A stretch of 64,000 nucleotides of DNA from Macrostomum lignano. Taxonomy: Eukaryota. The translations under genes were made by a program, and so were the position numbers. Location of the stretch: NCBI GenBank assembly GCA_002269645.1, contig NIVC01000514.1, forward strand, positions 493,453 through 557,452, given 5' to 3'. Positions 19,825-64,000 of this stretch are shown piece by piece (the first letter of the stretch is position 1; the number at the start of each line of letters is the position of its first letter). The notes below the pieces were generated by a model. That model was not told the origin of the DNA, did no database searches, and saw nothing but the letters and a program-made list of their open reading frames with translations.

Positions 19825-22800
19825 CTATGGACGGAGGGTTGGCGCCGCCCAGGGAGGTCCCCCAGTGTCGCCAGCAGCTATGGTGCTCTCTGGAAAGGAG
19901 AGTTCAGCCCTGCGGGTGGCCCGAAGGTAGCGCATGAGCTGATTAAAGTTTTCGGGTTTGCACGCTTCAGTAATAGATGTGTGTGGCCCGAGGTAAGTGA
20001 GTCTGGCCCGCGTGAAGGCGGGACAGATGCTGACGAAATGCTCAGCGGTTTCGTCACCTGAGTTGCAGAAACTACAGGTGGCGTTGGTGGCGTTGCCCTG
20101 CAGGTACTGGTGCCTGGAGAAGCAGCCGTGACCAGAGAGGGTCATGGTGGCAGCCCGGATGTCTCTGCGCGAGAGGCGCAAGAGGAGCTTCCGGAGCTGG
20201 TGAGAGGGCTGAGGGACAGCGCCTCTGGATTGCCTGCAGTTCGTGCGGTTCGCCCAAGTCGAGCGGTGCTGAGTCCTGATCCACGCTTTGATGCGCGAGT
20301 CGATGACACAGCCAGGAATCGGGACAAGAGGTTCGGGGCCGAGAGAGGAGCCGGAGGCACCAACTTTTGCAAGGGTGTCAGCCAACTCATTTCCTCGGAT
20401 CCCCACATGCCCCGGAACCCACTTAAGGGTAATTTTGTTGGCGGAACCCAACACATTGAGGAGTTTGATACAGTCAAGGACTGTAGCAGAGTTGGTGCTG
20501 CAGCCACTGATGGCGTGCAAGGCAGCTTGGCTGTCCGAATGGAAAATGATGTTCTTACCAGTAACGCCAGTGGCGAGAAGCTCTGCAGTGCAGGAGCTGA
20601 TGGCCAGAACTTCATTTTGGAAAACACTGGAGTTGACCCCAGTGTATTGAGCGTGGGTAGCGATGACCCTCCCGTTCAGAAAGATTCCAACACCAAAGCC
20701 GGTGTTGGCTGACTGCTTAGAACCGTCGGTGTAGCAATGAAGCTCACCAGGGTTCCAATGGTCATTGATGTTATCGCGCGAGTCGATAGCTACGGAGTAG
20801 CGCTGTCTCAGGTTGAGCGTTGAGGCAATGCCATCGGTGAAGACGCGATTGGCCTGACACTCGTTGAGAAAGTTGAGGCACAGATCGCTATGCGGGACAA
20901 GGTTCCGCTTAGCAGGTGCTCTCATGTAAATGAATTTGACGCCGGCATCAATTAGACGCCGCGTCGTTCTAGCCGCCTCACCCCTGATGAAGAGGTCAAG
21001 AGGCGGAAGATTAAGAAAGGCCCCCATGCCAGCAAAGGGCGTGGACCTGGTGGCGTTGCAGATGAGCCTACACGCTCTGCCTTGGATCGTGTTGAGCAGG
21101 TCTGCATGGCTTTTGACCTGGGTAGCGCTAACCCAGACAACAGAGGCGTACGTAATGGCAGGTCTAACTACGGAAGTATAGATCCACCAAAGCCGCTTTG
21201 GGGATAGACCCCAAGAAGTGCCAAGTGCTCGTCGGAGCTGGGCCAGGATGGCTGAGGCACGCTTAGCTTTTGCTTTCACGTGGAAGGACCAGTTGAGCCG
21301 GTGGTCAAGTGTGACCCCGAGACATCTGGTCTGGTGCGCGAAGGCAATATCTCTGCCGTAGAGCTGCAGAGGACGTATGTTCCAGCGTAGTCTGCTGGTA
21401 AACATAATGGCAACGGTTTTGGGCTCAGAGAGTTCCAAACCATTGTCATTGGCCCAGGATTCTGCTTTGCGGATAAAGCTCTGCATCAGATCCCTGAGCG
21501 TGCTGGGAGACGGTCCTGCCACAATGGCCGTGACGTCATCAGCATACCCGACTTTGAAGACGGGGTCAGGTCGGGAGTCACTCAGAAGAGCGTCCATGAC
21601 CAGGTTCCAGAGCGTCGGGGTGAGGACTCCGCCTTGGGGTCCACCCTTACAGACTCTGGTGGAGGCAGTTTGCCCAAGAAGTTGGGCAGTGACCGTACGG
21701 TTGGAGATCATGTACATGATCCACCGTATGAGGGTAGCATGAGCTTTGCGATTTTGAAGGGCCCTCTGAAACGCTTCAAAGATAACGTTGTCGAAGGCGC
21801 CAACAATGTCAAGAAAGAGAGCCAGGGCGTAACCGTCACCCAGTACCGCCCGTTCAATCTTTTCGACAATCGCATGCAGGGCGCTGTCAGTCGACCTCCC
21901 GGTACGGAAGGCGTGCTGATTATTGCTGAGGGGCATCGCTGTCAGCTCGCAGGAGAGCAGCCGCCAGAGAATAAGCCTCTCAGTGAGCTTAAGCATTGCT
22001 GACGTTAAGCTAATTGGCCGGAAGGCCTTGACGCTTTGGTAGTCACCCTTCCCAGGTTTGGGAATAAAGACTACTCGAGCTTCAGTCCAGCTTTTGGGAA
22101 CGTATCCCAGCTGGATAGAGGCCCGCATAAGATTGCGGGTGAGTCTCAGGAACGAGGGTATCTTGGCTGCTTCACGAAGGAGAACAGGGTAGATACCATC
22201 AGGTCCAGGAGATTTGAAGGGTTTGAAGGTTCTGACCGCACGAGCGATTAGGTCTTCAGTGACAATGCCCGCCGCTAGGGTGGCTCCATCCATCGAATGG
22301 TTGGGCTCCGGTCTAGCAGTAGGTACCCTCGGGAAGAATGTGCTAAGCATATGCTGAAGCACTTCTTCAGGGTCTTTAGTAAGAGAGCCATCATCTTTTT
22401 TGATCATGGCTAATTTGGACATTTTGTCCATTGTAAGGGCCTTGACAAGCCTAGAAGTAGGTCTGTCTTGATCCAATTCATTGCAGAATTGGCGCCACTT
22501 ACATTCCTTGGCCTTGCGCACTTCAGATTTGAAATTGCGGGAGGCTTGCCGGAAAAGCTCCATGTCCTCCGGGTTTCCGGTCTTCATGGCACGGCGATGA
22601 AGGCTTTTGGCCTTCCGCCTGAGTTTCCCCAGCTCCGGGTTCCACCACGGCGCCGAGGTCTTGCCTCTGTAGGCGCGAGCAGGACAAGCCGCTTCGTAGG
22701 CTGCAATAATGCAACCTGTCAGCGTCTCAGCCATATGATCCACATCCTCGCAGGTCTCAATCGGACGTAAGTCCGTGAGTTCCTGCAGGTGCAGATCAAG

Positions 22801-23565
22801 GGCAGCCTTGTAGGCCGCCCAATCAGTGTTGCGGATATTGCGTCTCCAAGTGATCGGAGACTGGGTTTTAGTGTCCGCGATATTAAAGGCGATAAAGCAG
22901 TGGTCAGACAGGGAGGGCTCCTCAGACCAGACTCTCCACTCCTTGACTCTGTCAAAGAGTCTTGGGGTAACGAGTGTGGCGTCGAGGACCTCGGTCCATC
23001 TGCCATTATTAAAGGTAGGAGTGCAGCCGCGGTTGCAGAGCATGAGGTTTGTGTTAGAGATGAGGGCCAGAAGCTCCTCTCCTCTAGTGTTGGTATCTTT
23101 GCTGCCCCAGTGCTTGTGGTGCGCGTTGAGGTCGCCCCCTAAGCACAGCTCAGCGTTCTGGGACTCGCAGTACTGCGCAAGGCGCAGTAAACTCTCGGGA
23201 GCAGGGTCTCTGTCGCCTGGGATATAAACCGAGGCAACAAGACACGTACGCGGAGAGAAATGATTAGATTGGATGACGCAAAGGTCTCCATCAGAGAGAT
23301 CAGTCCTCAGCCAAGCCTGGAGATGGCTAGCAGCGAGGATAGCCGCTCTAGGGCGGCTGTTCCCCGGGCCACACACATAAAAATCAGAGTAGCCAGAGGG
23401 AATGTTGGGCAACGTACCGTTGCGCATCCAGGGTTCCTGGATCAGGATGAGGCCTGGCCTGTACAGCTCAGCAATCTTCATCAGATTTACTGACGCAGAT
23501 ACGCAATGCTGTAAATTTATTTGCAGACAGAATGTCGCTCCTTTGGCAGCGTGGAGCTTAGTCAT
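19825..23565 (-). CDS. LINE ORF2: apurinic-like endonuclease, reverse transcriptase, RNase H and C-terminal CCHC finger (1246 aa, uninterrupted)
   Basis: EN motifs QINLQH, IQEPW, GGDLNAHH, SDH. RT motifs KSPGPDG, FRPISL, QHAFR, FLDIVGAFD, GPQGGVLTP, YADD, LGVTLD. RNase H motifs YTDGSK, QNEVLAI, HSDSQAAL, WVPGH, NELADTLAK. Zinc finger CSFC...ETAEHFVSIC. Confidence 0.97.
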   Translation of the reverse strand: MTKLHAAKGATFCLQINLQHCVSASVNLMKIAELYRPGLILIQEPWMRNGTLPNIPSGYSDFYVCGPGNSRPRAAILAASHLQAWLRTDLSDGDLCVIQSNHFSPRTCLVASVYIPGDRDPAPESLLRLAQYCESQNAELCLGGDLNAHHKHWGSKDTNTRGEELLALISNTNLMLCNRGCTPTFNNGRWTEVLDATLVTPRLFDRVKEWRVWSEEPSLSDHCFIAFNIADTKTQSPITWRRNIRNTDWAAYKAALDLHLQELTDLRPIETCEDVDHMAETLTGCIIAAYEAACPARAYRGKTSAPWWNPELGKLRRKAKSLHRRAMKTGNPEDMELFRQASRNFKSEVRKAKECKWRQFCNELDQDRPTSRLVKALTMDKMSKLAMIKKDDGSLTKDPEEVLQHMLSTFFPRVPTARPEPNHSMDGATLAAGIVTEDLIARAVRTFKPFKSPGPDGIYPVLLREAAKIPSFLRLTRNLMRASIQLGYVPKSWTEARVVFIPKPGKGDYQSVKAFRPISLTSAMLKLTERLILWRLLSCELTAMPLSNNQHAFRTGRSTDSALHAIVEKIERAVLGDGYALALFLDIVGAFDNVIFEAFQRALQNRKAHATLIRWIMYMISNRTVTAQLLGQTASTRVCKGGPQGGVLTPTLWNLVMDALLSDSRPDPVFKVGYADDVTAIVAGPSPSTLRDLMQSFIRKAESWANDNGLELSEPKTVAIMFTSRLRWNIRPLQLYGRDIAFAHQTRCLGVTLDHRLNWSFHVKAKAKRASAILAQLRRALGTSWGLSPKRLWWIYTSVVRPAITYASVVWVSATQVKSHADLLNTIQGRACRLICNATRSTPFAGMGAFLNLPPLDLFIRGEAARTTRRLIDAGVKFIYMRAPAKRNLVPHSDLCLNFLNECQANRVFTDGIASTLNLRQRYSVAIDSRDNINDHWNPGELHCYTDGSKQSANTGFGVGIFLNGRVIATHAQYTGVNSSVFQNEVLAISSCTAELLATGVTGKNIIFHSDSQAALHAISGCSTNSATVLDCIKLLNVLGSANKITLKWVPGHVGIRGNELADTLAKVGASGSSLGPEPLVPIPGCVIDSRIKAWIRTQHRSTWANRTNCRQSRGAVPQPSHQLRKLLLRLSRRDIRAATMTLSGHGCFSRHQYLQGNATNATCSFCNSGDETAEHFVSICPAFTRARLTYLGPHTSITEACKPENFNQLMRYLRATRRAELSFPESTIAAGDTGGPPWAAPTLRP

Positions 23566-23829
23566 ACTGTATTAAATGCAATATCTGGCTAGAGCCCAGG
23601 GCCATCAAGGAGACTTGGACAACAGATCGTCCTCGTCCCAGGCCGCTGGGGCTTGACTGGGAGATGGGAGTTGGTCGACGTCCATGGCCTCCTCACCCCC
23701 ACCGGCCCCCCAGCAGAGTCCTCAGGCTCCGATGACAGGATGGAGGAAGCTTCCTCACCTGCATCTTTACCTTCAGACCCCACCAAGGTGGCCGAGGAGA
23801 GCTCGGATTCCGAAGACCCGGCCTCGTCC

Positions 23830-25164
23830 TCAACTCCTTCTCCGACTGGCAGGTTTGGTTCCCGGGGCTCGGCCGGAGCCGTTACCGCGGTCCGAACTGC
23901 TGCTAGCAGAGGGGCGAGATGCAGCTTTGGCTTTGGGATCGGCTTGCGCCTTTCCTTGGGCCTTAGACTGCGCCCCGCTCTTGCCGGAGATGCCGGGGTT
24001 GGCAGTAGCCTTCCCTTTGGCAGACTTTCCTCGGCGCAACTTGAGCTTGAGGGCACCCAGCTGGAAAGAGGATCCATTAGGGTACCGACTCGCCCAAGTG
24101 CTGGAAAGGCCGAGGACAATTGAGTTGCCCGTCTCCCCCCTGCGGACTTTGCGGTGATACACCAGTCCACTAGCAGGGAGGTCGGGGTTCAGACGCAGTA
24201 GGACCCGGCGAATAACGTCTGGTCCAGCTGCGGTGCTCTTAGCAGGGACGAAAACCACATAGGGTATCGTCTTTGGACGCTGGCCCTCGCGAAGAAAAAG
24301 AGCTCCACCAAGGTCAGCATCCAAGGAGACCGTCGGTAGCCGCTGGAGCAGCCGCCGAGCGTCCTCCTCGCTGCTAGGAGCAATAAGAACGAATGTGCTT
24401 CGCAGCACCATCCGCTCAACGCCGATGGAGATTCCCTCCTCGACAGTCAGCTCAATCAGATAGGAGTCAACAGCACTCCACACTTTTTGAAGCTGATCAG
24501 TGGTCCAGTCCTGGTCGCGACCTTGGATGATCACTCCCGGGATTTTGGCCTTGGCCTTCGCCGCAAAGGTAGCTCCCGAAGGAACCTCCTTGTTGGCAGT
24601 GGCCATTTGTTGCGCCGTGGTTTCGGCCTCAGCAGCCGCGGCAGCAGCTCCAGGGAGCGCCGCCGCTGAACTACTGGAGCTTCCACCGGCCGGCCCGCCT
24701 GGTTGCCTTGGGACTCCAGTCGCTTCAGCATCCATGGTGGACGCCGCCGCTTTGGCCCCCGCAGCTCCCTTCTTGGCCTGCCTTTTGGCGCGTTGTTTAG
24801 CGCGTTTGCGCTCAAGCCGAGCCCGCTGAGCTTCATCAGATCTGCCAGATTTGGCCGGTCCTTTAGGCTCAGAGCTCGCGGTTCCCTTAGATCCACCAGC
24901 GGAGCTGGCAGGTCTTAGGGTATTTTGAGTTTGGTAGCTCTGGTCGGATCTGCCAGCAGAGCCAGCCGGTCCTTCCTTTGCCACAGTTGAATCAGTCGGT
25001 TGGGATCTGCCAGCAGGGCCGGCCGGTCCTTCGGACTGAGGTTGGGGTTTAGAAGGGTCCCCGTCCCTAGAAATAGCTTGTTTATCCATAGTCGGCTCGA
25101 AGGCCATGATAAAAGGTTGGTGGGCTACCCTCAAAGGGGCGCGGTACCCACCCGGCCGCTCCAC
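23830..25164 (-). CDS. LINE ORF1 (Gag-like nucleic-acid-binding protein; first ATG at about 25109)
   Basis: 444 aa open frame upstream of ORF2 on the same strand. Basic/low-complexity N- and C-termini surround a folded core (VVFVP...VLLRLNPDLPASG...) reminiscent of LOA-clade ORF1 (DUF4780-like; not verified). No CCHC knuckle seen. Confidence 0.8.
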   Translation of the reverse strand: MERPGGYRAPLRVAHQPFIMAFEPTMDKQAISRDGDPSKPQPQSEGPAGPAGRSQPTDSTVAKEGPAGSAGRSDQSYQTQNTLRPASSAGGSKGTASSEPKGPAKSGRSDEAQRARLERKRAKQRAKRQAKKGAAGAKAAASTMDAEATGVPRQPGGPAGGSSSSSAAALPGAAAAAAEAETTAQQMATANKEVPSGATFAAKAKAKIPGVIIQGRDQDWTTDQLQKVWSAVDSYLIELTVEEGISIGVERMVLRSTFVLIAPSSEEDARRLLQRLPTVSLDADLGGALFLREGQRPKTIPYVVFVPAKSTAAGPDVIRRVLLRLNPDLPASGLVYHRKVRRGETGNSIVLGLSSTWASRYPNGSSFQLGALKLKLRRGKSAKGKATANPGISGKSGAQSKAQGKAQADPKAKAASRPSASSSSDRGNGSGRAPGTKPASRRRS

Positions 25165-32972: not shown

Positions 32973-36857
<3,885 letters not shown>

Positions 36858-44954: not shown

Positions 44955-47900
44955 TCACTTCAGCGCCAGGGCGGTGGTGGAGCGGCTGTGCTGGTGCTGC
45001 TGGGCAGCCGCTGACTGGCCGGCAGGCAGCCGCTGCCGCTGGGCGCCCTCGGGCAGCATGCGGACGCCGGGCACGGAGAAGATGGAGAGGGCTGCGGGCG
45101 GGAGTGGCCAGGATGGGGATGAGCTTCTCAAAGCTGAGCCTCAGAGAGTATTACTGTTATTAACATCAATACATATTGGCAAAGAGAGGCGCTAAATCTG
45201 CGGGAAACTCACTGGGCGGCAGGTCCTTCAGCGGCGCTGGCAGGCCATCGAAGTACGGATGCGCCAGGGCCTCGGCGGCTGTCAGCCGCTCCTCCGGGAA
45301 CAGCCGCAGGCAGGCCAGCACGAGGTCCTCGGCGTGCAGGATGGCCAGCAGGCGGGGCAGCAGCTTGTGCAGCCGGCAGCCGCGGTAGCGGGGCAGCGCC
45401 GGCGAGAAATTCGGCAGCTTCGACACGCCGGGCCACACAGACTCGCCAGGGGTGCCCATGATCTGCGGGCGGGCGGGGCGGCTGTGCTGGGACTGGCTGA
45501 CAGACTATGGGACTGGCTGACAGACTATGGGACTGGCTGACAGACTATGGGACTGGCTGACAGACTATGGGACTGGCTGACAGACTATGGGACTGGCTGA
45601 CAGACTATGGGACTGACTGACAGACTATGGGACTGGCTGACAGACTATGGGACTGGCTGAGCAAGCACAGACTTACCCTGAAGATGCGGTCCAGTTGATC
45701 CTCGGCATCGCGGACTCCGGGAAACAGCGGCGTCCCGCTGATCATCTCGGCGTGGATGCAGCCCACAGCCCACACGTCCAGAGTCGAGGAGTACTTGGTG
45801 CTGCCGAGCAGGACTTCCGGCGGCCGGTACCACAGCGTGACGATCTCGGAGCTGTAGGTCTTGCTGGGCACGGTCTGGGCGCGGGCCAGGCCGAAGTCTG
45901 CCAGCTTGAGCTCGCCGATGGCCGAGATCAGCAGGTTCTGCGGCTTCAGGTCTCGGTGAAGGATTTTCTGCTTATGACAGAACTCCAGGCCTCGGAGCAG
46001 TTGGAATAGAAACAGCTGTGGGGGAATGAGGAGTAATATGAGCCAGTGAGCTTGGGTCGGTGGCATCGAAGGAATCCGATTGGCTGGGAAGGCTGGGGTT
46101 GGTAGCAGCGAAATAATCCGATTGGTTGGGGAGGCTGGGGTAGGTGGCAGTGAAGGAATCCGATTGGCTGGGAAGGCTGGGGTGGTAGCAGTGAAGGAAT
46201 CCGATTGGCTGGGGAGGCTGTGGCAGTAAAGGAATCCGATTGGCTGGGGAGGCTGGGGTTGGTAGCAGTGAAGGAATCCGATTGGCTGGGAAGGCTGGGG
46301 TTGGTAGCAGTGAAGGAATCCGATTGGCTGGGGAGACTGTGGGAGTAAAGGAATCCGATTGGCTGGGAAGGCTGGGGTTGGTAGCAGTGAAGGAATCCGA
46401 TTGGCTGGGGAGACTGTGGGAGTAAAGGAATCCGATTGGCTGGGGAGGCTGGGGTTGGTAGCAGTGAAGGAATCCGATTGGCTGGGGAGGCTGTGGTACG
46501 AGTAGTAAAGGAATCCAATTGGCTGGGGAGGCTGTGGGAGTAAAGGAATCCGATTGGCTGGGGAGGCTGGGGTTGGTAGCAGTGAAGGAATCCGATTGGC
46601 TGGGAAGGCTGGGGTTGGTAGCAGTGAAGGAATCCGATTGGCTGGGGAGGCTGTGGGAGTAAAGGAATCCGATTGGCTGGGGAGGCTGGGATTGGTAGCA
46701 GTGAAGGAATCCGATTGGCTGGGGAGGCTGTCTGAATTTAGTTACGTAAATAAAATAATCAAACCAATCTACCAGCAGCCCTACCTTGACATTGTGAGAA
46801 CGCAGGCCTCCCGGATGCTTCTCCAAGTACTTGCTCAAATCCAGAGGCTGTAACCATAGTTGGAAGGCAATACAAAAAACTACAAGCAAGTCATAAAAAA
46901 CTCTGAGTTCTATAGAGTCCTATCAGGTAGCTTGTACTCACCACATATTCAAAGACAAAGGTAAGGCTGTTCTCGGTGTGAATAATATCGTGCAGGGTCA
47001 CAATGTTGGCATGCTTCAGGCCCTTGAGAAGCGAGGCTGCAGAGGCAGGGTTTGGAATGGCATCGCATACAGTTGCTAACAGTAAAGCTACAATGAAGGC
47101 TGCAGCGCTCACCCTCTCTGATTGCGGTGAACGGCGTGCCCTCCTCGTGCTGCAGCCGAATGTCCTTCAGCGCCACAATGGAGTTGGTGACGCTGCGCGG
47201 TGGAGGGGGTTTGAAATTCGTTAGCAGAGGGAGCTGCATGGCAGGCTGGAAGCCAGCTTTTATGAGCCTATCAAGTTAGATTTTAGGCTTAGAGAATGGC
47301 CAGCAAATATGAAGCCTGATAAGCTGCAAAGAGTCGTGCCGCTGACCTCTGAGCACCTTTCTCATTCTCAGTCAGTCAAGTGCACACTGCGCCTGGGGGT
47401 TGTCAATCATATCGGGTGTGCTGCTAGGAAAAGCTGCGCTCCCAAGACTTGAGAAGCCACCAGGCCCCACAAACTCATTGTGAGAAGCCACCAGGCCCCA
47501 CAAACTCACTGTGAGAAGCCACTTGGCCCAAGCACTCACTGTGAGAAGCCATCAGGCCCCACAAACTCACTGTGAGAAGCCACCAGGCCCTACAAACTCA
47601 CTGTGAGAAAACACCAAGCCCCACAAACTTATTGTGAGAAGCCACCAGGCCCCACAAACTCACTGTGAGAAGCCACCAGGCCCCACAAACTCACTGTGAG
47701 AAGCCCTTGTACACCGTAGCGTAGCTGCCCTCGCCCAGCGCCTCCAGCTTTTGGTAGGAGGCCGACCTGCCAAACGACAGGCCCTGCCGCATGGCCTGGC
47801 CGACACCGCCGATGCTGCTGCCGGCGCCGCCACCGGCGCCATAGTCCACGCCGTCAAAGAAGCCTTCAGATTTTGGCCTGTTGGCTTTCTTCTGCTTTTT

Positions 47901-50900
47901 AGTCAGCTGCTGTTGCTGCTGCTTCAGGCCGCGCATTGAGCTGGACGGCTGCAGGCCAGCGGCTGGCACTGCAGCGGCGGCTTCTGGCTGCTGTTGCGGC
48001 TGCTGCTGCGGCTGTTGCTGCTTGCTGGTCACATTGCCAGTGGAATGGTGACGCCGCATCAGACCGTTGCGTATGGAGAATGCTGGGAGTTGCAGCGGGG
48101 AGTGACAGCTTTCAGATCCCACAACCATTACAACCTGCCTGCCCAACCGGGATTGCAGCTGTTAAAAACGCAGGCAATACTACTCAAATCAGTAGGCCAA
48201 CTCACTCTTGAAGAACCGTTTCTGCTTCTCAATGTACTGGTCGCGCATTTCCTGCGTCAGCACTTTCTCCTGGCCGCCGCCCGCCGCCGCTGCTGACCCG
48301 GCCGCCCTGCCACCGCCCGGCGGATCGCCGCTGCCGCCGTTCGCCTGCGACACCTGCGGCGGAAAAGTGGGAGAAACATTCCAATTGGGAAATGGACTAT
48401 GGGAAAGGACTACGGAATTCCTTTTGAATACGGAATTTTATTCTAAAAAATCTCTCAACTAAGGAAAAGGTTTGAAAACTCCTAAATTGAAAATCGGGTT
48501 GTATATGGAGATCTAAAGAGCAGGGAAATCTCCCTAAATTGGGAAATGGATTATTCGAAATCTCCCAAATTGGACAATGGATTAACGAAATCTCCCTAAA
48601 TTGGGAAATGGATTATTTGAAATCTCCCAAATTGGACAATGGATTAACGAAATCTCCCTAAATTGGGAAATGGATTATTCGAAATCTCCCAAATTGGACA
48701 ATGGATTAACGAAATCTCCCTAAATTGGGAAATGGATTATTTGAAATCTCCCAAATTGGACAATGGATTAACGAAATCTCCCTAAATTGGGAAATGGATT
48801 CTTGGAAATCTCCTAAATTGGAAAATGGATTAATGAAATCTCCCAAATTGGACAATGGATTAACGAAATCTCCCTAAATTGGGAAATGGATTCTTGGAAA
48901 TCTCCTAAATTGGGAAATGGATTAATGAAATCTCCCAAATTGGACAATGGATTAACGAAATCTCCCTAAATTGGGAAATGGATTCTTTGAAATCTCCCAA
49001 ATTGGACAATGGATTAACGAAATCTCCCTAAATTGGGAAATGGATTCTTGGAAATCTCCTAAATTGGAAAATGGATTAATGAAATCTCCCAAATTGGACA
49101 ATGGATTAACGAAATCTCCCTAAATTGGGAAATGGATTCTTGGAAATCTCCTAAATTGGAAAATGGATTAATGAAATCTCCCAAATTGGACAATGGATTA
49201 ACGAAATCTCCCTAAATTGGGAAATGGATTCTTGGAAATCTCCTAAATTGGAAAATGGATTAATGAAATCTCCCAAATTGGACAATGGATTAATGAGTCT
49301 TCCCAAATTGGGAAATGGATTAATGAAATCTCCTAAATTAAGAAATGGATTAATGAAATCTCCTAAATTAAGAAATGGATTAATTGAAATCTCCTAAATT
49401 GGAAAATGGATTAATGAAATCTCCTAAATTGGGAAATGGATTATTGGAAATCTCCCAAATTGGACAATGGATTAATGAATCTTTCCAAATTGGGAAATGG
49501 ATTAATGAAATCTCCCCATATTAGGAAATGGATTCTTGGAAATCTCACAAATTGGACAATGGATTAATGAAATCTCCTAAATTGGGAAATGGATTATTGG
49601 AAATCTCCCAAATTGGACAATGGATTAACGAAATCTCCCTAAATTGGGAAATGGATTCTTGGAAATCTCTTAAATTGGAAAATGGATTAATGAAATCTCC
49701 CAAATTGGACAATGGATTAATGAGTCTTCCCAAATTGGGAAATGGATTAATGAGTCTTCCCAAATTGGGAAATGGATTAATGAAATCTCCCAAATTGGAC
49801 AATGGATTAATGAGTCTTCCCAAATTGGGAAATGGATTAATGAAATCTCCTAAATTAAGAAATGGATTAATGAAATCTCCTAAATTAAGAAATGGATTAA
49901 TTGAAATCTCCTAAATTGGAAAATGGATTAATGAAATCTCCTAAATTGGGAAATGGATTATTGGAAATCTCACAAATTGGACAATGGATTAATGAATCTT
50001 TCCAAATTGGGAAATGGATTAATGAAATCTCCCCATATTAGGAAATGGATTCTTGGAAATCTCACAAATTGGACAATGGATTAATGAATCTTTCCAAATT
50101 GGGAAATGGATTAATGAAATCTCCCCATATTAGGAAATGGATTCTTGGAAATCTCACAAATTGGACAATGGATTAATGAATCTTTCCAAATTGGGAAATG
50201 GATTAATGAAATCTCCCCATATTAGGAAATGGATTCTTGGAAATCTCACAAATTGGACAATGGATTAATGAATCTTTCCAAATTGGGAAATGGATTAATG
50301 AAATCTCCCCATATTAGGAAAGGATTCTTGGAAATCTCACAAATTGGACAATGGATTAATGAATCTTTCCAAATTGGGAAATGGATTAATGAAATCTCCC
50401 CATATTAGGAAATGGATTCTTGGAAATCTCCCAAATTGGACAATGGATTAATGAATCTTTCCAAATTGGGAAATGGATTAATGAAATCTCCCCATATTAG
50501 GAAATGGATTCTTGGAAATCTCACAAATTGGAAAATGGATTAATGAAATCTTCTAAATTGGGAAATGGATTAATGAAATCTCCTAAATTAAGAAATGGAT
50601 TCTTGGAAATCTCCTAAATTGGGAAATGGATTAATGAAATCTCCTAAATTGGGAAATGGATTCTTGGAAATCTCCTAAATTGGAAAATGGATTAATGAAA
50701 TCTCCCAAATTGGACAATGGATTAATGAGTCTTCCCAAATTGGGAAATGGATTAATGAAATCTCCTAAATTAAGAAATGGATTAATGAAATCTCCTAAAT
50801 TAAGAAATGGATTAATTGAAATCTCCTAAATTGGAAAATGGATTAATGAAATCTCCTAAATTGGGAAATGGATTATTGGAAATCTCACAAATTGGACAAT

Positions 50901-53900: not shown

Positions 53901-56435
53901 CTGAGCCAGTCCAGATATCCACCGGGGTTAATGCGGACACAGAGAAGTCCTGATAGGGCATGTTAATAGCCTGAAGAGGCTGACAAGGTGCAGCTCGGAT
54001 GCTGAACGAAAAAAAATGCCTTCTTCTCAAGGAAATCCAAAGAATAAAAAACGGTGCAGACTAAAATGGAATAATAATAAACCCAGTGAATACCGCTAAT
54101 TTAAGAAAAGTACACTGAAATAATTTACAACAGTTGAAAGCAATGGACTGCAAACATTAAAGTACACGGTGCAGACGAAACTCGCATAAACTGCAGATCG
54201 GACAGAATTGGCTTCATGGACTGCTTGCGAATGCAGGACGGGCAGGGGGACTGGCCGAGCAAGCGGGGCCGGTGAAGCCCGATAAACAAACAGCCGTGTA
54301 AACAGAGCCACCTTCGCGACCTCCCCACCCTGCCGGACAGTCAGTGAGGGGCAGGCGGTGTCGCGCCGCTCGCACACAAGAAATCCCAAAGCGATCGGGG
54401 ATTAAGCTGCTGGGCGAGGCGCTGAGACCGGCGGACAGGGAGGAGGAAGAAATGAGAGAATTTTGCCTTCGAGCCGAGGCCGAGCTCCGCGAGCCCCACC
54501 TCCCCCCCCCCCGCCAGCCTAAGCCGGGCCCAAAGGCAGTAAAAACCGGCACGCAGAGGAAAACTGAGATGGGGGAGGGCGGATTTGAAACAAGCAGAAG
54601 GCGGATGCGCTTCTCGCCCAGCTGTGCCGAGGGCAGAAGAAGTCGCTTATGACGGGACGCCCCTGAGCGGCAATTTCCTAGCATGCCACGGGCTGCCGCA
54701 GCTGGTCCGCCTGCTGATTACTGGCTGCGTCTGCCGCTTTGAGAATGACGCAAATTGGGAAACTCTTGCGAGTTGAGTGGGCATGGGGACTGGTCAGCTG
54801 ACATGGGGACTGGTCAGCTGACATGGGGACTGGTCAGCTGACATGGGGACTGGTCAGCTGACATGGGGACTGGTCAGCTGACATGGGGACTGGTCAGCTG
54901 ACATGGGGACTGGTCAGCTGACATGGGGACTGGTCAGCTGACATGGGGACTGGTCAGCTGACATGGGGACTGGTCAGCTGACATGGGGACAGGTCTCGCA
55001 TGCTGGCACAAGGCAACTCACCCCGAACATGGAGCCGTGCAGGGCAGACGTGGATCCATTGGCCTGCAGCTGTTGTGACGGCGGGTCATTTTGCAGCAGT
55101 GCTGGCGGTGATGAGGAGGAGTTTGATATAGTTGATGCACGAATAACTGTTTAACTGCTTTACAGAGGGTTAACGGTTCAATCAGAGCTACATGAATTTT
55201 TACATTGGGTACACAATCTCCTTCAGTAAGAATTACAATTCCGAATCCCATTTATAAACTCTAATCCACTCACACAGCTTGGAGAAGGACAGGGAGATGC
55301 GGGAGCGCAGACTCCTCAGCCGGTCCCGGCTCGAAGCGGTCCTGGCCACGGAGGCGGCGGCCTGCTGCTGCTGCTCGTGACAGCCTGAGTGGCGAGCGGG
55401 GAGCAATTCGGGATGTGAATCTCAATGGGATTTTAACAAAGTTAAACAAGTTTTTCAAGAGTTACCTATCGTGTGGAGTTAAGAGACTGCAATTTCAATT
55501 TTTTTATAACGAAACTGCAGTGTAGCAAGCCAACAGCCCCCATGGCGCTCATATCCAATATCGCAGTGGTGAGCACTGAGCACACACAGAGCACTCCAAT
55601 ATCGCAGTGGTGAGCACTGAGCACACACAGAGCACTCCAATATCGCAGTGGTAAGCACTGAGCACACAGAGCACTCCAATATCGCAGTGGGAGCACTGAG
55701 CACACAGAGCACTCCAATATCGCAGTGGTAAGCACTGAGCACACAGAGCACTCCAATATCGCAGTGGTAAGCACTGAGCACACACAGAGCACTCCAATAT
55801 CGCAGTGGTGAGCACTGAGCACACAGAGCACTCCAATATCGTAGTGGTGAGCACTGAGCGCACAGAGCACTCCAATATCGCAGTGGTGAGCACTGAGCAC
55901 ACAGAGCACTCCAATATTTCAGTGGTAAGCACTGAGCACACAGAAAGCACTCACCCATCTCAGGCACAGCCAGCGGAGCAGCTCCTGTTGCCATGGAAAC
56001 GGCGCCAACGCCGAGCTGCGCCTCGTTCATCGACTGAACCATGAGGTCGTCGCCGGGCCGCTGCGGGCAGCACCGATGGTGGCCGCCTTCGCCACCGCCG
56101 ACAGCCGCACCTGCAGCCAGGTAGGCGGCGTAGCCGGGCGGCAGGTTCAGCACCTCGCTGCGTGGCCGCGGCGGCTTGCCCAGGCGGAGCAGCGAGAAGC
56201 GGCTCTTCGCCGTCACCTGAGGCTGCTGGTGATGGAGAGGCTGCTGATGAAGCTGCAGGCCGCCGCTGGTCCCGGCTACGGCGGCCTCGCTGGTGGCGGT
56301 GGCGAGAGCGGTGCTGGCGGAGCGGGCGATGCCGTTGGCACCTGAGAAGCCGGGATAGCGCTGGTCGGAGGGCAGCTGCGCTTCGGCCTCGTAACCATAG
56401 TAACCGCTGAGATGCTTGGCGCCGTGATGAGTCAT
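44955..56435 (-). CDS. CDK14: PFTAIRE-type cyclin-dependent kinase (CDK14/CDK15/Eip63E class), 11 coding exons, 738 aa
   Basis: Exons (minus): 56435-55955, 55384-55274, 55146-55022, 48353-48206, 48082-47695, 47192-47113, 47036-46942, 46847-46785, 46015-45677, 45462-45213, 45091-44955. All introns are GT-AG, phases are consistent, and the total is 2217 nt. Motifs [67 protein letters not shown]. The link of the three 5' exons across a 6.7 kb intron is inferred from phase and from similarity to the Eip63E N-terminal motif. Confidence 0.93.
45490..45660. repeat. Intronic minisatellite, 20 bp unit cagactatgggactggctga
   Basis: About 8.5 copies filling most of CDK intron 45463-45676. Confidence 0.95.
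46065..46732. repeat. Intronic minisatellite with alternating ~33 and ~42 bp units around aaggaatccgattggctggggaggctg
   Basis: About 17 copies in CDK intron 46016-46784. Confidence 0.93.
47452..47705. repeat. Minisatellite, 31 bp unit spanning a CDK exon/intron junction
   Basis: gccaccaggccccacaaactcactgtgagaa x8; the rightmost copy overlaps the exon end at 47695. Confidence 0.93.
48525..51205. repeat. AT-rich satellite, ~30-33 bp unit (aaatctcccaaattgggaaatggattaatg), 2.7 kb, intronic
   Basis: Continuous array of variants with two-unit (~63-65 bp) and larger higher-order blocks. Confidence 0.96.
53548..53875. repeat. Minisatellite, 21 bp unit tgatcggctaccgatatgtgc
   Basis: About 15 copies. 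Confidence 0.95.
54781..54990. repeat. Minisatellite, 20 bp unit catggggactggtcagctga
   Basis: About 10 perfect copies, starting ~30 nt into the intron after the exon ending at 55022. Confidence 0.96.
55545..55948. repeat. Intronic minisatellite, 39-41 bp unit gagcactccaatatcgcagtggtgagcactgagcacacaca
   Basis: About 10 copies starting right at the donor of the exon ending at 55955. Confidence 0.95.
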
Positions 56436-57768: not shown

Positions 57769-60006
57769 ATTGTTGAGCAAAACAAGAGGGTCTCTGCATA
57801 AAGATCAAAGAAAGATATTATCTTGACACAATGATGCACTTGGCATTCTTTTTTGGGCTTGACACTTTTCTTGAGCTCTGCTCTACAGAATTGAATTTTT
57901 ATTTCTTTGAATTTGAGAACCAAATCAAAAGGCTTATAAAAACATATTGCAAGGTAGCCAAGAAGCCATACAATGTTGAGCTGCATGACAAATTAGACAC
58001 TGAGCCATTGAAGAGAAGTCAAAGAGCTGTACAAGTTCATCAAAAACACTTCTTGAAAGGCAGCAGAACTAATTGCCATGGATCCAGATAGTCTATCAAT
58101 CCCATTGGCTCTCAAAGCAGCATTTTTATCTAAGCCAAATAGAAATGCTAGCCAACCAGATGTTGTAAACAATGCAACAATTGCTAAAGCTAAATCAGAA
58201 ACTATACCCCATAAAAAATGGATAGACCACCATAGTGTAGAAGGATAGGTATAAAATAGAAATCATATACCAAGGCTAGGTATAGTATATATTGTATATC
58301 ATTCATTTTTACTACAGGGCCTTTTATCATACATATTATAACATTATATATGTTGGCCACACTATTGTACATTATATGCATAGTGCATTCACAGGTTCAC
58401 AATAAGACTATGAATTTATAAATGGCTACATTACTACTATTTATATTACTTGAAGTTGTAGTCAATATAATAGTATGTTATATGATATTTAATTACATTA
58501 TTAGAATGCTCATTAAAAACAAAATTTACAATATGTTTTTAATGTGTTTTTTTACAGTTTAAGTATAAAAACTGTACAATACAATAGTTTTTAAAACCTT
58601 GCTGCAATAAAACATAAAATTTATATTTTTAGGCCAAGCAAATATATAATATAGATTTACCTTTTATTTTAGTCTTTACTTTATATAATGATTTTTTAAT
58701 TTAATCAACACTTAATTTATTTGTATACCAACTTCTATGCTTTTTCTTGGAATGTCTATAGAATTGAGCATTGTTATACAGCTAAAGTAAAATTATTTGA
58801 CTATTATTATATTTATACCGTTATATATACAAAAGACTAAAACTGAAATTTACTTTTACTTTTTGTCATACATGGAAATCCTTCTGCACTATGGATAGAC
58901 CACTCTGTAAACTTCAAAATTGTGTTATTTTTCTTGGGTATAGTTTCTAAATGCTAACTTTTGTTTTGGTAGGAATATACTTTGCTACAAAATTTTCTAT
59001 TTCAAAAAAATTGAAAGAGAATATAGGTAAATTTTATCTTATTTAAACAATCCTGCTGTCCACAGTAAACATCTAACAACTTTTGCAACAATCCTATAAT
59101 GTAGGAATAAAAAAGAAAAAGAAAAAATAGCTAATTATATTGGCATTGCAGTTTATAGTGACTTTTTGCCAAAACTAACTAGGGGGCATAAACATTTTTG
59201 TTCAATTTAAAAAATATATGCTATGCAGAACTTCAAAAGCACCCTTTTTAATGTACTTTGCAAATATTTTTTAAAGCTCTAACATTAACTCTAAGTAGGC
59301 CTTAATATTATACTAAAGCAAAAATTAATATAGCCTAATAATAGGCCTAGATATAAAATATAAAAATCTAAGATTCTTGATTTAAAGATTGAAATCAAGA
59401 GAACTAGGCCTAGTTCATTAATAATTGTATCAATAATCATATCAAAATTTTAAGTAGAATATACTCATGAGTCATAAATGCCTCGAACCTGTCAACCTGA
59501 TCCAGCCAACCAACCAGGTGATGCTACAATATTACAGTATTATTCATATTTAGATCGGGTCCAGGGGCAAGGCTGGAGCTCTAAACCAACTAAGTAATTT
59601 TATCAAAGCTGTCACTTACGCCACTTACCACTAGATCCGCGTACTGTACTAAACTACGCCTACTACTAACAACAAATGGTACAACAACACGATTATTTCT
59701 CAACAATTTATAACGGATATTTCGGTAATTTCGTTTATTCTAACGGTAACTTTCCTTCAGTCGTACATCTCTGCATTTATGTTTTCTTTTTTAATGCGCT
59801 TTGAAAATTTACATTATTCTTTTTGAGTGACCTATCTTTTGTTTTTCAACCAAACGATTTGCGAACATAGCATACAGCTTTGTTTTAACCAGTTATATTT
59901 TTCACCGGCTTGTAGCATTAGAGCTATATACAGTGGTATATAGTGGTCCTTGGCCTCTGCTAAAACGCAGCTAAAGTTTAACTTTAACTCGATTATGGCA
60001 TATGCT

Positions 60007-60034
60007 GGACTGACTGACTGATGGACTGACTGTT

Positions 60035-60066
<32 letters not shown>

Positions 60067-60797
60067 TGACTGACTGACTGACTGACTGACTGACTGACTG
60101 ACTGACTGACTGACTGACTGACTGACTGACTGACTGACTGACTGACTGACTGACTGACTGACTGACTGACTGACTGACTGACTGACTGACTGACTGACTG
60201 ACTGACTGACTGACTGACTGACTGACTGACTGACTGACTGACTGACTGACTGACTGACTGACTGACTGACTGACTGACTGACTGACTGACTGACTGACTG
60301 ACTGACTGACTGACTGACTGACTGACTGACTGACTGACTGACTGACTGACTGACTGACTGACTGACTGACTGACTGACTGACTGACTGACTGACTGACTG
60401 ACTGACTGACTGACTGACTGACTGACTGACTGACTGACTGACTGACTGACTGACTGACTGACTGACTGACTGACTGACTGACTGACTGACTGACTGACTG
60501 ACTGACTGACTGACTGACTGACTGACTGACTGACTGACTGACTGACTGACTGACTGACTGACTGACTGACTGACTGACTGACTGACTGACTGACTGACTG
60601 ACTGACTGACTGACTGACTGACTGACTGACTGACTGACTGACTGACTGACTGACTGACTGACTGACTGACTGACTGACTGACTGACTGACTGACTGACTG
60701 ACTGACTGACTGACTGACTGACTGACTGACTGACTGACTGACTGACTGACTGACTGACTGACTGACTGACTGACTGACTGACTGACTGACTGACTGA
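60007..60797. repeat. (ACTG)n tetranucleotide microsatellite, ~790 bp
   Basis: Almost perfect run. Confidence 0.99.
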
Positions 60798-60944
60798 AAT
60801 GATTAAGACATCACAACAAAGCTTTTTTGGATGCTAGCATTGCCCAAAGAGCTGGTAATAAGCTGCAATGCTATATCACATTTATTCAGAGTCAAAGAAG
60901 CTTATTGACTCTATAGTTCATTTGAAAGCGAGGCTGCCGCTCGA

Positions 60945-61115
60945 TCATAGCATGCAGCCGCCCTGACCAACGCAGAAGCCGAGATTGCACACGTTTTCAG
61001 GCTCTCCAACACAGCTGCCATCGTCACTCTCAGCGTCGCAGCTGCAGTCGCCAGCCGCCAGTTGCGCGGCGCCTACCAGAACCAGAGCAACGAGAAGCAT
61101 CAGAAGTCTCAGCAT
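60945..61115 (-). CDS. Small secreted cysteine-rich peptide, 56 aa (signal peptide plus 34 aa mature part with 6 Cys)
   Basis: Hand translation: MLRLLMLLVALVLVGAAQLAAG-DCSCDAESDDGSCVGEPENVCNLGFCVGQGGCML*. Kozak-like GAGCCATG, a hydrophobic h-region ending in an A-A-G cleavage site, AATAAA at 60886-60881 (~60 nt after the stop), and a pyrimidine tract plus AG 34 nt upstream. It is below the 60 aa ORF-track cutoff. Confidence 0.75.
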   Translation of the reverse strand: MLRLLMLLVALVLVGAAQLAAGDCSCDAESDDGSCVGEPENVCNLGFCVGQGGCML

Positions 61116-61971
61116 GGCTCGGCTTGTACGAGTAGGAGTTTGATCGAATCTTTAAATGAAAGTATTGAAAATCGCGAGTTGCAGAAAGCTCGGAGGTGTG
61201 AATCGAACTCAATAAATGTAAAAGAGAGTCCGGAAGCCTTCATAGGGGCGGGGGCGGGCGGCGAGGACTTTTATGGCTCTGTGTTTTTGGTAGCTGTCGA
61301 AATGATCGTCAGGCTTCTGCATACTCCCCGGCGAATCGACGTTGTCAGCCAGGAGCGGCTTTCTTTTGAAGCGGAAATTTTCATTGCTGTGCCGCCGAGT
61401 TGACTTCGCCACTTTTATTTCGCCTGTCTGCTGGGATTGTTTTGCACCCGTCACTAATTGTTGACTTCATTTTTCCACACACAAGTTGCCTCAAACGGCA
61501 CAAGATTGCGTCCGCCCCAATTTTTCCTAACTTTCCTTAAGTTTCTTTCAGTTTTCTCAAAGAAAACTTCTGATTTGCTGTGTTCGAGTCGCATTTTGTC
61601 AGAGCACGTTTATTGCAAAAGCAAACTCTCAGACTCGAAGTCTACATAGCGTTTAGGGAGATCCTTTGCCATGACTAAAGCCTAGCTGCTTTAGAGGTTT
61701 CGAAACCGCTCGTATTTAGGATTTGTCAACATATTGCTCCATCAAATTGAAAGTCTGTGACACGAGAAGCCCAATTGGCCCTCGCCGGCGGCTGAATGGC
61801 CCACTAGCAAGCACAGCTGGATGTCTTGGGCCTGCACCGCCACCCCCTTTTATAGACACTATGATGACGAAAAGCTCTTAACTGTCGTCTTCAGTGGCTT
61901 GGGAAGTGATAAGCTGGAAGGCGAGAAAGGGCAATTTTTTTTGCTCAAACAAATATTAAATGGAGCGCGAT

Positions 61972-62783
61972 AGAGGCATGGGGGTGCGGACAGTGACAGT
62001 CACAGAGGCATGGGAGGTGCGTGCGTACAGTGACAGTCACAGAGGCATGGGAGGTGCGTACAGTGACAGTCACAGTGGCATGGGGGATGCGTACAGTGAC
62101 AGTCACAGAGGCATGGGAGTGCGTACAGTGACAGTCACAGAGGCATGGGGGATGCGTACAGTGACAGTCACAGAGGCATGGGGGATGCGTACAGTGACAG
62201 TCACAGAGGCATGGGGGATGCGTACAGTGACAGTCACAGAGGCATGGGAGTGCGTACAGTGACAGTCACAGTGGCATGGGGGATGCGTACAGTGACAGTC
62301 ACAGAGGCATGGGGGTGCGTACAGTGACAGTCACAGAGGCATGGGGGTGCGTACAGTGACAGTCACAGAGGCATGGGGGATGCGTACAGTGACAGTCACA
62401 GAGGCATGGGGGTGCGTACAGTGACAGTCACAGAGGCATGGGGGTGCGGACAGTGACAGTCACAGAGGCATGGGGGTGCGTACAGTGACAGTCACAGAGG
62501 CATGGGGGTGCGGACAGTGACAGTCACAGAGGCATGGGGGTGCGTACAGTGACAGTCACAGTGGCATGGGGGATGCGTACAGTGACAGTCACAGAGGCAT
62601 GGGGGTGCGTACAGTGACAGTCACAGAGGCATGGGGGATGCGTACAGTGACAGTCACAGAGGCATGGGAGGTGCGTACAGTGACAGTCACAGAGGCATGG
62701 GGGTGCGTACAGTGACAGTCACAGAGGCATGGGGGATGCGTACAGTGACAGTCACAGAGGCATAGGGGATGCGTACAGTGACA
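61972..62783. repeat. Minisatellite, 32-33 bp unit gtacagtgacagtcacagaggcatgggggtgc
   Basis: About 25 copies. Confidence 0.96.
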
Positions 62784-64000
62784 GTCACAGAGGCATGGGA
62801 GGTTCAAGCGTTGAATAATGAGCGTACAGCGTGAGACAATGCACGTTTAGTCAACATCTCCTGGGAAAATTCGGTAACAAAGTAATCCAATTAAAAGCAG
62901 CTCAATTTGACCTTGATTTTGGGATGTACAAGTATTGAAAAAAATATTTCTCCATCCTTTTGCACACATAGACTAAAACAGCCTGACTAGTTGGACAGCA
63001 AAGTCCGATTCCATTTTGACAGCTGCTTCAAAACTGACACTCTGGTTTGTGTACCCAAAAGGTCCGCTTCAGTTTTGACAACTCCTAATCAAAATTAAAC
63101 AGTCACTGCATCCTTAATAAGTCCGTTACTCTGGATTAAGTCAACTGCCCCTAAGCTGAACTGCAAAGAGCAATATTCTGTTTCCCCAGCGCAGCTCCGA
63201 AAAAGTTGAATCTGAAAGATGGCCGCATTTGAGTCTGAGGATTTTTAGTTCGCATTCCAGAAACTCACGTAAGTACATCTACATCTACCAGCAGCTGGTA
63301 AAAGTGGTCTTTATGGTCAAGAAAAACTCGATTTGTCACGGCTGCTAAGGGCGAGATCAATTTGTGTGTCTACAAAGAATTTTAAAGCTGCTTAGCCCGC
63401 TTACTATTAGTAGAGCCTTGCAGTATAGACTCCTAATGTTATACTGAAGTAACTTATAAAAAATACCAACTAATAAACGTGTTCAAGTGTTTTTGCATGC
63501 TAAATTGTTGAAACAGAACACAAACGATGGTTGCAAAGTGAGGGGCACGGGGTCGCATTGAGAATTGCTTGTATTTATTTAGACTTTCACAAGCCTCGCC
63601 AGGGTCTGCAAGCATCTGCATCATTTTGAGTTCATCGAGCTGGCATGATTGAGCAGCCAATCGCGTGCGGGGGGAAAAGCAGAGCTGCGGCAGATCGCCA
63701 GCTTTTGCAGGTTTTGTTTGCTCATCGGACGGGAATGCGCTCACGGAGAAAGGCAATGCTCCCCTTGTCTCTGCCACCGAGGTTCGACTCTTGACTGTTG
63801 CTGGAAGGCGATTGACGGTGAAATTTCTGCCAAAGTGGACCAAAAGGTGGCGGAAAATTTTGGGTTGCTCACGAGTCACTTCCAGGGAGATTTGAAGCTG
63901 CGGAGATTTTGGAGGGGACCCTCAAGGGAAACCTCGGCGGGAATCTCTGGATAATTTTCAGGGAGACTTCATATGCAGATTCTCGGCGTACATTCCCAGT

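Follow-up and report, generated by a model that had tools for sequence, protein, structure and literature searches.

Is a reading frame of 56 codons on the minus strand of a flatworm contig a gene, and what does it encode? This question was raised by a 64,000-nucleotide stretch of the Macrostomum lignano genome (NCBI GenBank assembly GCA_002269645.1, contig NIVC01000514.1, positions 493,453 to 557,452 of the forward strand). The whole stretch is called the window here, and positions are counted from its first letter. A sequence-only reading of the window, made before any database search, had described a short open reading frame (ORF) with a signal-like N-terminus, six cysteines and an acidic product. 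The ORF was proposed to be a small gene with a secreted, disulfide-rich product, too short to pass a 60-aa ORF cutoff; a toxin, a protease inhibitor, a pheromone or a reproductive or mucus peptide were the candidate products. The 56-aa frame, its signal-like N-terminus, the cysteine spacing and the charge were all present as described. The proposal gained support from paralogues at other loci of the same animal. From the sequences compared, we consider it likely that the ORF is a real single-exon gene encoding a secreted disulfide-rich peptide of the Mlig013770/Mlig020725 family.

The reading frame and its relatives

On the minus strand, the ORF runs over 60945..61115 from an ATG start and specifies a product of 56 aa (MLRLLMLLVALVLVGAAQLAAGDCSCDAESDDGSCVGEPENVCNLGFCVGQGGCML). 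The precursor N-terminus was composed of an MLR n-region, an unbroken hydrophobic core of 12 residues and a following AQLAAG, in which positions −3 and −1 are occupied by small residues. The signal peptide and its cleavage site were called from this n/h/c-region layout and the −3/−1 rule. The predicted signal peptide comprises 22 codons (61050..61115, minus strand; MLRLLMLLVALVLVGAAQLAAG), with cleavage predicted between AAG and D. The predicted mature peptide comprises the following 34 codons (60948..61049, minus strand; DCSCDAESDDGSCVGEPENVCNLGFCVGQGGCML). It contained six cysteines with spacing 1/8/7/4/5, seven acidic residues and no basic residue, giving a net charge of about −7. The stop codon TGA lies at 60945..60947 (minus strand), and the equivalent position is used in both paralogues described below. 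The context of the start codon was gagccATGc, and the purine at −3 was retained in both paralogues.

Three matches came from an exhaustive HMMER (phmmer) search that covered 1.84 billion representative proteins, and two of them were accepted as relatives. Both were hypothetical proteins of M. lignano, with E = 5.6e-5 (residues 1-54) and E = 2.7e-4 (residues 1-56). The first was BOX15_Mlig013770g1 (PAA93506.1, 56 aa). The second was BOX15_Mlig020725g1-g3 (PAA58764.1, which is Mlig020725g1, PAA49576.1 and PAA47085.1), whose three neopolyploid copies encoded an identical peptide. The third match, a protein of 639 aa (P0001), was rejected as spurious. It matched only GSCVGEPENVCNLG of the window copy through five summed repeats, this motif was not present in the paralogues, and its internal repeats resembled, as judged from sequence, those of bacterial surface proteins. 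A tblastn comparison of the peptide with the paralogous loci gave E = 1.5e-11 and 5e-5. The window peptide resembled this family over its full length, with a protein identity of only 50-57%.

The alignment of the three peptides contained 23 invariant columns, which included positions in the signal peptide, the cysteines and QGGC. All three shared the signal pattern MLR(F/L)LMLL.AL.LV.A.Q. In the mature region they shared a D(x)CSC start, six ordered cysteines, G(F/I)C and QGGC followed by two residues at the C-terminus. The invariant mature residues were all six cysteines, the N-terminal D, the S of CSC, the G preceding Cys5 and QGGC. The predicted mature N-terminus was D in every sequence, and no member had gained or lost a cysteine. 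The loops were less regular, with spacing 1/8/7/4/5 in the window copy versus 1/6/7/2/5 and 1/6/5/4/7 in the paralogues. The net charge was −7 in the window copy, −3 in one paralogue and 0 in the other. Anionic character, which had been put forward as a defining trait, is thus a property of the window copy only and not of the family, and, with paralogues at about −3 and 0, function is unlikely to hinge on charge.

Other searches added no further relative. A profile search of a 5.8-billion-sequence collection returned nothing beyond the same two paralogues; the profile had been built from these two and the window peptide, and its E = 1.4e-25 indicates only that no further member turned up. The peptide by itself, used as the query of a k-mer-indexed homologue search, gave no match, and a metagenome scan with the signal-peptide DNA gave 0 matches. 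No further paralogue was found elsewhere in the window, and no tandem copy was found at the Mlig013770 locus (L001) or at the Mlig020725 locus (L002). The window gene is very probably the third member of a family that is uncharacterised and has its other representatives only in M. lignano.

We then considered whether an intergenic ORF could resemble a signal peptide and cysteines by chance. The frame is short (56 aa) and located between two large tandem-repeat arrays. Its GC content at third codon positions (GC3) was 0.62, which was not clearly above that of the other frames (0.71 and 0.46) and was below that of a kinase exon in the window (0.83). However, among 189 ATG-initiated ORFs of 40-120 aa, counted over all six frames of the window, this one alone had a signal-like N-terminus. 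When the window was simulated 200 times with a second-order Markov model, no simulation contained an ORF with a signal-like start and at least six cysteines. The criteria for both counts were set after the ORF had been seen. Moreover, two independent, transcript-annotated M. lignano loci keep the frame, start, stop, signal and six cysteines. The sequence-only reading had named in advance, as a result that would count against it, homologous DNA that did not preserve the frame and cysteines; the homologous DNA preserves both. Because of the comparison with the paralogues, a chance origin is refuted for practical purposes, and we give it almost no weight.

Rates of change in the signal and mature regions

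Substitution rates were calculated by the Nei-Gojobori method and compared with Jukes-Cantor (JC) distances on the aligned non-coding flanks, which were 0.35-0.55. In the signal region, the nonsynonymous rate (dN) was 0.13-0.17 and the synonymous rate (dS) was 0.24-0.30. The corresponding proportions of differing sites (pN 0.12-0.15 and pS 0.20-0.25) were both below the divergence of the flanks. In the mature region, dN was 0.41-0.61 and dS was 0.68-0.95. All six cysteine columns were invariant, compared with 6 of the 22 other ungapped mature columns (hypergeometric P of about 0.002, from hand-counted columns). These patterns were read as strong constraint on the signal peptide and on the putative disulfide scaffold, with loops that appear to evolve at about the neutral rate or above it. 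The loops may be under diversifying selection, which three sequences are insufficient to demonstrate.

Sequence shared around the reading frame

The window was aligned at the DNA level with L001 and L002; two other copies of Mlig020725 are designated L003 and L004. The homology of the three loci started about 12 bases upstream of a CATAAAA box (61269..61275, minus strand), which lies 160 nt upstream of the ATG. CATAAA was invariant in all three loci, and the box is inferred to be a TATA-like core-promoter candidate. A block in the 5' leader, GGCTTCCGGAC (61228..61238, minus strand), contains CTTCCGG. Within the leader, GGCTTCCGGA was invariant in all three loci, as was the terminal C of the block across a 2-base gap of the two paralogues. 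CTTCCGG is the reverse complement of an ETS-type CCGGAAG core, a candidate binding motif.

The coding sequences were 171, 171 and 162 nt in length, and each length difference was a multiple of 3, so that the frame was kept. Nucleotide identity to the paralogues was 83-87% in the signal-peptide codons. The mature region was barely alignable as DNA in the comparison of the three loci (42-56%), and the comparison of signal and mature codons gave 42-64% for it. An AATAAA polyadenylation signal (60881..60886, minus strand) follows the stop codon by 59 nt and was invariant in the three loci. Both CATAAAA and AATAAA had been picked out from the letters as signals of a gene, and their conservation agrees with this assignment.

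A palindrome, TAGCATTGC...GCAATGCTA (60835..60873, minus strand), lies 8-50 nt after AATAAA. Its 7-bp core arms, GCATTGC and GCAATGC, were invariant in the three loci, and the palindrome was unique in the window. A stable RNA hairpin was rejected as an explanation, with a folding energy like that of shuffled controls (z = −0.31). The palindrome provides no covariation evidence because neither arm varies. It may serve in protein binding or in 3' processing.

On its 3' side, the conserved unit ends in a (CAGT)n microsatellite (60008..60797, minus strand), which reads as (GACT)197 on the plus strand. The array was found at the matching relative position 3' of the gene, with 197 copies in the window, 28 in L001 (10301-10412), 88 in L002 (10383-10733) and 52 in L003 (3385-3591). 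In the window, CATAAA, GGCTTCCGGA, AATAAA, the palindrome and (CAGT)n were all aligned with their counterparts in both paralogous loci. The presence of (CAGT)n beside every member may mean that it has a role in 3'-end formation, recombination or duplication, or it may be a passenger.

Outside these limits, there was no homology between the window and either paralogous locus, upstream of the unit or past the microsatellite. No synteny of flanks or neighbouring genes was found between them at the DNA or translated level, and L001 and L002 shared with each other only a patchy similarity upstream. Conservation therefore did not reach beyond the parts required by a compact single-exon gene, which was taken as evidence of selection on the whole unit. 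A retroposed or transposon-borne origin of the unit was unsupported, and the copies include the CATAAA box and carry no poly(A) tract. DNA duplication followed by decay of unconstrained flanks fits better, because CATAAA was copied, poly(A) is absent and L001 and L002 retain patchy upstream similarity.

The same alignment bears on whether the ORF is an exon of a larger gene. It could be a first exon that contributes a signal peptide, or it could share a polycistronic, trans-spliced unit with a kinase farther downstream. GGTAGG, a potential splice donor, is located within the signal-peptide codons. Multi-gene precursor transcripts occur in M. lignano (PMC5730564). A kinase gene lies 2.4-2.7 kb downstream on the same strand in L002, L003 and L004, and kinase exons also lie downstream on the same strand in the window. 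However, the paralogue models are complete single-exon ORFs with an equivalent stop followed by the invariant AATAAA. Conservation extends over the entire ORF, and both the C-terminal QGGC and the stop codon are part of it. The kinases differ between loci and have no DNA or translated similarity, and the nearest kinase exon of the window is about 13 kb away. A larger gene is therefore very improbable, and a single-exon gene remains the preferred interpretation.

Comparison with known peptide families

The cysteine framework had not been recognised from the sequence, and this was borne out by the searches. Pfam, NCBIfam and PDB sequence and profile searches gave no meaningful relative, a Pfam scan of the window peptide gave no model at E <= 10, and an Rfam scan of 56-64 kb gave no match. 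The only Pfam matches on the paralogues were to Defensin_propep (E = 0.04-0.14, below cutoff), and these fell on residues 3-20 and 3-28, which are wholly or almost wholly signal peptide. AlphaFold with the three-sequence alignment gave best models whose mean predicted local distance difference test score (pLDDT) was 71 (precursor) and 75 (mature peptide), and the other models scored 50-67. The best models contained short predicted beta-strands and one helical turn. Foldseek against PDB gave 0 matches for the precursor or mature model, although this is a weak method for 34-residue models of moderate confidence.

Knottins of the inhibitor cystine knot (ICK) type and other three-disulfide mini-proteins, as well as defensins, likewise have about 30-35 residues and six cysteines and are secreted, mainly with short beta-strands as in the predicted models. 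In contrast to them, loop 1 of the window family is a single residue, giving an N-terminal C-x-C. The family has neither a CC pair nor a CxxxC or C-terminal CxC defensin signature. No relevant knottin match was found in Pfam (E <= 10), PDB sequences or Foldseek. No model of a defensin domain, whether cysteine-stabilised alpha/beta (CS-alpha/beta), beta-defensin or big defensin, was found on the three peptides.

EGF-like domains share with the peptide the number of cysteines (six), a single C-x-C pair and, ahead of the last cysteine, a G-F/Y...G motif. However, C-x-C is at Cys1-Cys2 in the window peptide and at Cys4-Cys5 in EGF. The EGF spacing is C-x7-C-x4-5-C-x10-13-C-x-C-x8-C, which the window peptide does not fit, and no EGF model was obtained at E <= 10. 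Taken together, these sequence comparisons did not support membership in the EGF, knottin or defensin families.

In organisation, the family was similar to conotoxins, by analogy and not by homology. Conotoxin gene superfamilies have a conserved signal, a fixed cysteine framework and very divergent loops between the cysteines. The window family likewise has a conserved signal, a variable mature region and all cysteines kept, and both dN and dS of the mature region are above those of the signal region, as in conotoxins. However, it has no pro-region and one exon instead of several, its C-x-C-...-C-C-C-C spacing matches no Pfam toxin model, and positive selection on the mature peptide is not demonstrated. 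The source animal, a flatworm, feeds on diatoms and is not known to have a venom apparatus. Another lead is given by small acidic disulfide-rich signalling peptides such as the Er pheromones of Euplotes, which are secreted, strongly acidic proteins of about 35-40 residues with three disulfides and an N-terminal Asp. These ciliate proteins are helical bundles without sequence similarity to the window peptide, and acidity is not conserved in the flatworm family.

Expression of the window copy

The annotation that holds both paralogues was built from a genome-guided RNA-seq transcriptome (PMC5730564). The family is therefore transcribed, because the paralogue gene models derive from this RNA-seq-based annotation. 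Whether the window copy is expressed as well was weighed separately.

Several observations weigh against our interpretation. First, the exact window product was not found in the gene collection, while both paralogues are annotated. Look-ups of four window ORFs in that collection likewise gave no exact match, and a spliced-leader sequence that was looked for was absent. The gene IDs of the paralogues were not found in the full-text literature or supplementary files searched. Sequence strings of the family were likewise not found in the supplementary data searched, and no organ was linked to the family. Second, the 5' leader of the window copy had 56-59% identity to the paralogues, against 75% between the paralogues. 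Third, the window copy alone has an upstream ATG (61241-61243, minus strand), from which a 44-codon ORF (61109..61243) begins in a different frame and overlaps the main start. If this ATG at 61243 is inside the transcript, it could dampen translation of the window peptide. Fourth, the signal peptide was judged by rule-based layout and not by SignalP, and the five AlphaFold models were scattered (pLDDT 50-75) and mutually discordant. Finally, dN of the mature region was close to the divergence of the flanks and above it in one of three pairs only (P = 0.02), and an arms race is thus not demonstrated.

Some of these observations would be explained if the window copy were a silent or decaying duplicate, with its frame intact but no longer expressed or translated. 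Its product is unrecorded, whereas both paralogues were annotated from transcripts. Its leader is the most diverged of the three, it alone has the out-of-frame upstream ATG, and its microsatellite has expanded to 790 bp versus 112-351 bp at the other loci. However, no frameshift or premature stop was found, and the six cysteines, CATAAA, the purine at −3, AATAAA and the 3' palindrome were all retained. The JC distance of the flanks (0.44-0.55) would be enough to destroy an unconstrained 171-nt frame and these motifs. In addition, the published annotation excluded transcripts that overlapped repeat annotations (PMC5730564), which could explain the missing product. The window copy abuts the 790-bp microsatellite and was, for this reason, plausibly dropped. 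We consider a silent duplicate unlikely, though it carries more weight than the other two alternatives, and a functional gene remains the interpretation that we favour.

The description of the gene as unannotated was right for the exact window product. It was not right for the family, since the two paralogues were already annotated as hypothetical proteins. The annotated gene collection lacks at least one member, and therefore the family may extend beyond its two annotated loci.

Predicted mode of action

In the proposed mechanism, the 22 N-terminal residues would direct the nascent chain into the endoplasmic reticulum and would be cut off after AAG. The 34-residue peptide starting at Asp would be the final product; it was taken as such because no dibasic site, pro-region or amidation signal was found in it. 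The six cysteines would form three disulfides and give a compact, protease-resistant scaffold. The peptide would be released by a secretory cell and act extracellularly, where the variable loops may bind a target.

The candidate products named in the sequence-only reading were not distinguished by these comparisons, and three broad roles were ranked. Host defence through an interaction peptide of gland or epidermis, with antimicrobial or toxin-like activity, was placed first, as a tentative choice. A reproductive role, as a seminal-fluid or pheromone peptide, was placed second and is somewhat less probable. Many Macrostomum prostate transcripts encode secreted proteins (PMC5977470), and reproduction-related genes of Macrostomum are reported to be fast-evolving (PMC7336406). 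Another secretory role, for example in mucus, eggshell or adhesion, was placed third, with a still smaller chance.

A broader proposal is that the framework C-x-C-x(6-8)-C-x(5-7)-C-x(2-4)-C-x(5-8)-C is undescribed and macrostomid-specific, possibly a new mini-protein fold, that it evolves like toxins or antimicrobial peptides, and that its members are bioactive secreted effectors. We regard this proposal as speculative and hold it with some doubt. If it is true, the effectors might be antimicrobial, directed against predators or prey, or mate-manipulating, with a frozen signal and scaffold and free loops. Such peptides are almost undescribed from free-living flatworms. Antimicrobials, toxins, pheromones and seminal-fluid effectors come in large part from small secreted cysteine-rich peptides, which gene finders regularly miss. 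In this case, a 56-codon ORF spotted by eye appeared to be a conserved gene of a family without curated relatives. Since M. lignano is tractable for transgenesis, RNA interference and in situ hybridisation, the family offers a case for the roles of peptides in free-living flatworms and for whether its cysteine framework is a new fold. It is also a case for the spread of compact units, from promoter to poly(A) signal plus microsatellite, in a neopolyploid genome.

Neighbouring sequence

The kinase genes near the family members were compared. All three Mlig020725 copies are followed, 2.4-2.7 kb downstream on the same strand, by a gene for a kinase that has two kinase domains and about 771 aa (L002 12807-20249, L003 5616-6249 and L004 5634-5975). 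No equivalent of this gene was found in the window. A transcription unit shared by the Mlig020725 copies and the downstream kinase is a possibility.

In the window, protein-kinase exons were located at 45605-48146 and 32973-34124 (minus strand). One was CDK14-18-like by its motifs. The other was DYRK-like by motif reading, with a sub-threshold Pkinase match that covered only its last ~30 residues. The kinase exons were interleaved with long coding-looking minisatellites (HSPA, GHPV and PQPIGFL repeats), which are presumably intronic. An ORF of 318 aa at 55479-56435 (minus strand) was first taken as the first exon of the kinase gene, a doubtful assignment. It had no homologue at E <= 0.001 in the collection of 5.8 billion proteins.

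An apparently intact retrotransposon lacking long terminal repeats (non-LTR) was located at 19825-25164 (minus strand). Its ORF2 of 1246 aa contained apurinic/apyrimidinic (AP) endonuclease, reverse transcriptase and RNase H, and an upstream ORF1-like frame of 444 aa gave no Pfam match. A distantly related non-LTR element (33-60% aa identity) was located 1.5 kb upstream of Mlig013770 in L001. At 7703-16118 (plus strand), long ORFs of 796, 568, 263, 247, 598 and 282 aa were found on the same strand. No Pfam domain was found in the three longest, and the ORFs of this run may together be the exons of a single gene, which would be very large, repetitive and lineage-specific.

Two features were observed upstream of the peptide gene. 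A 33-bp minisatellite of about 25 copies with 94% matches occupied 61972-62799, about 700 bp upstream of the CATAAA box. Between this minisatellite and the gene, TATAAAAGG was located at 61854-61846 (minus strand), with no obvious ORF attached. On the other side, the block at 58000-60000 that adjoins the microsatellite had 29% GC, compared with 38-61% in the other 2-kb stretches of the window, and it may be an AT-rich insertion or a satellite-like spacer.

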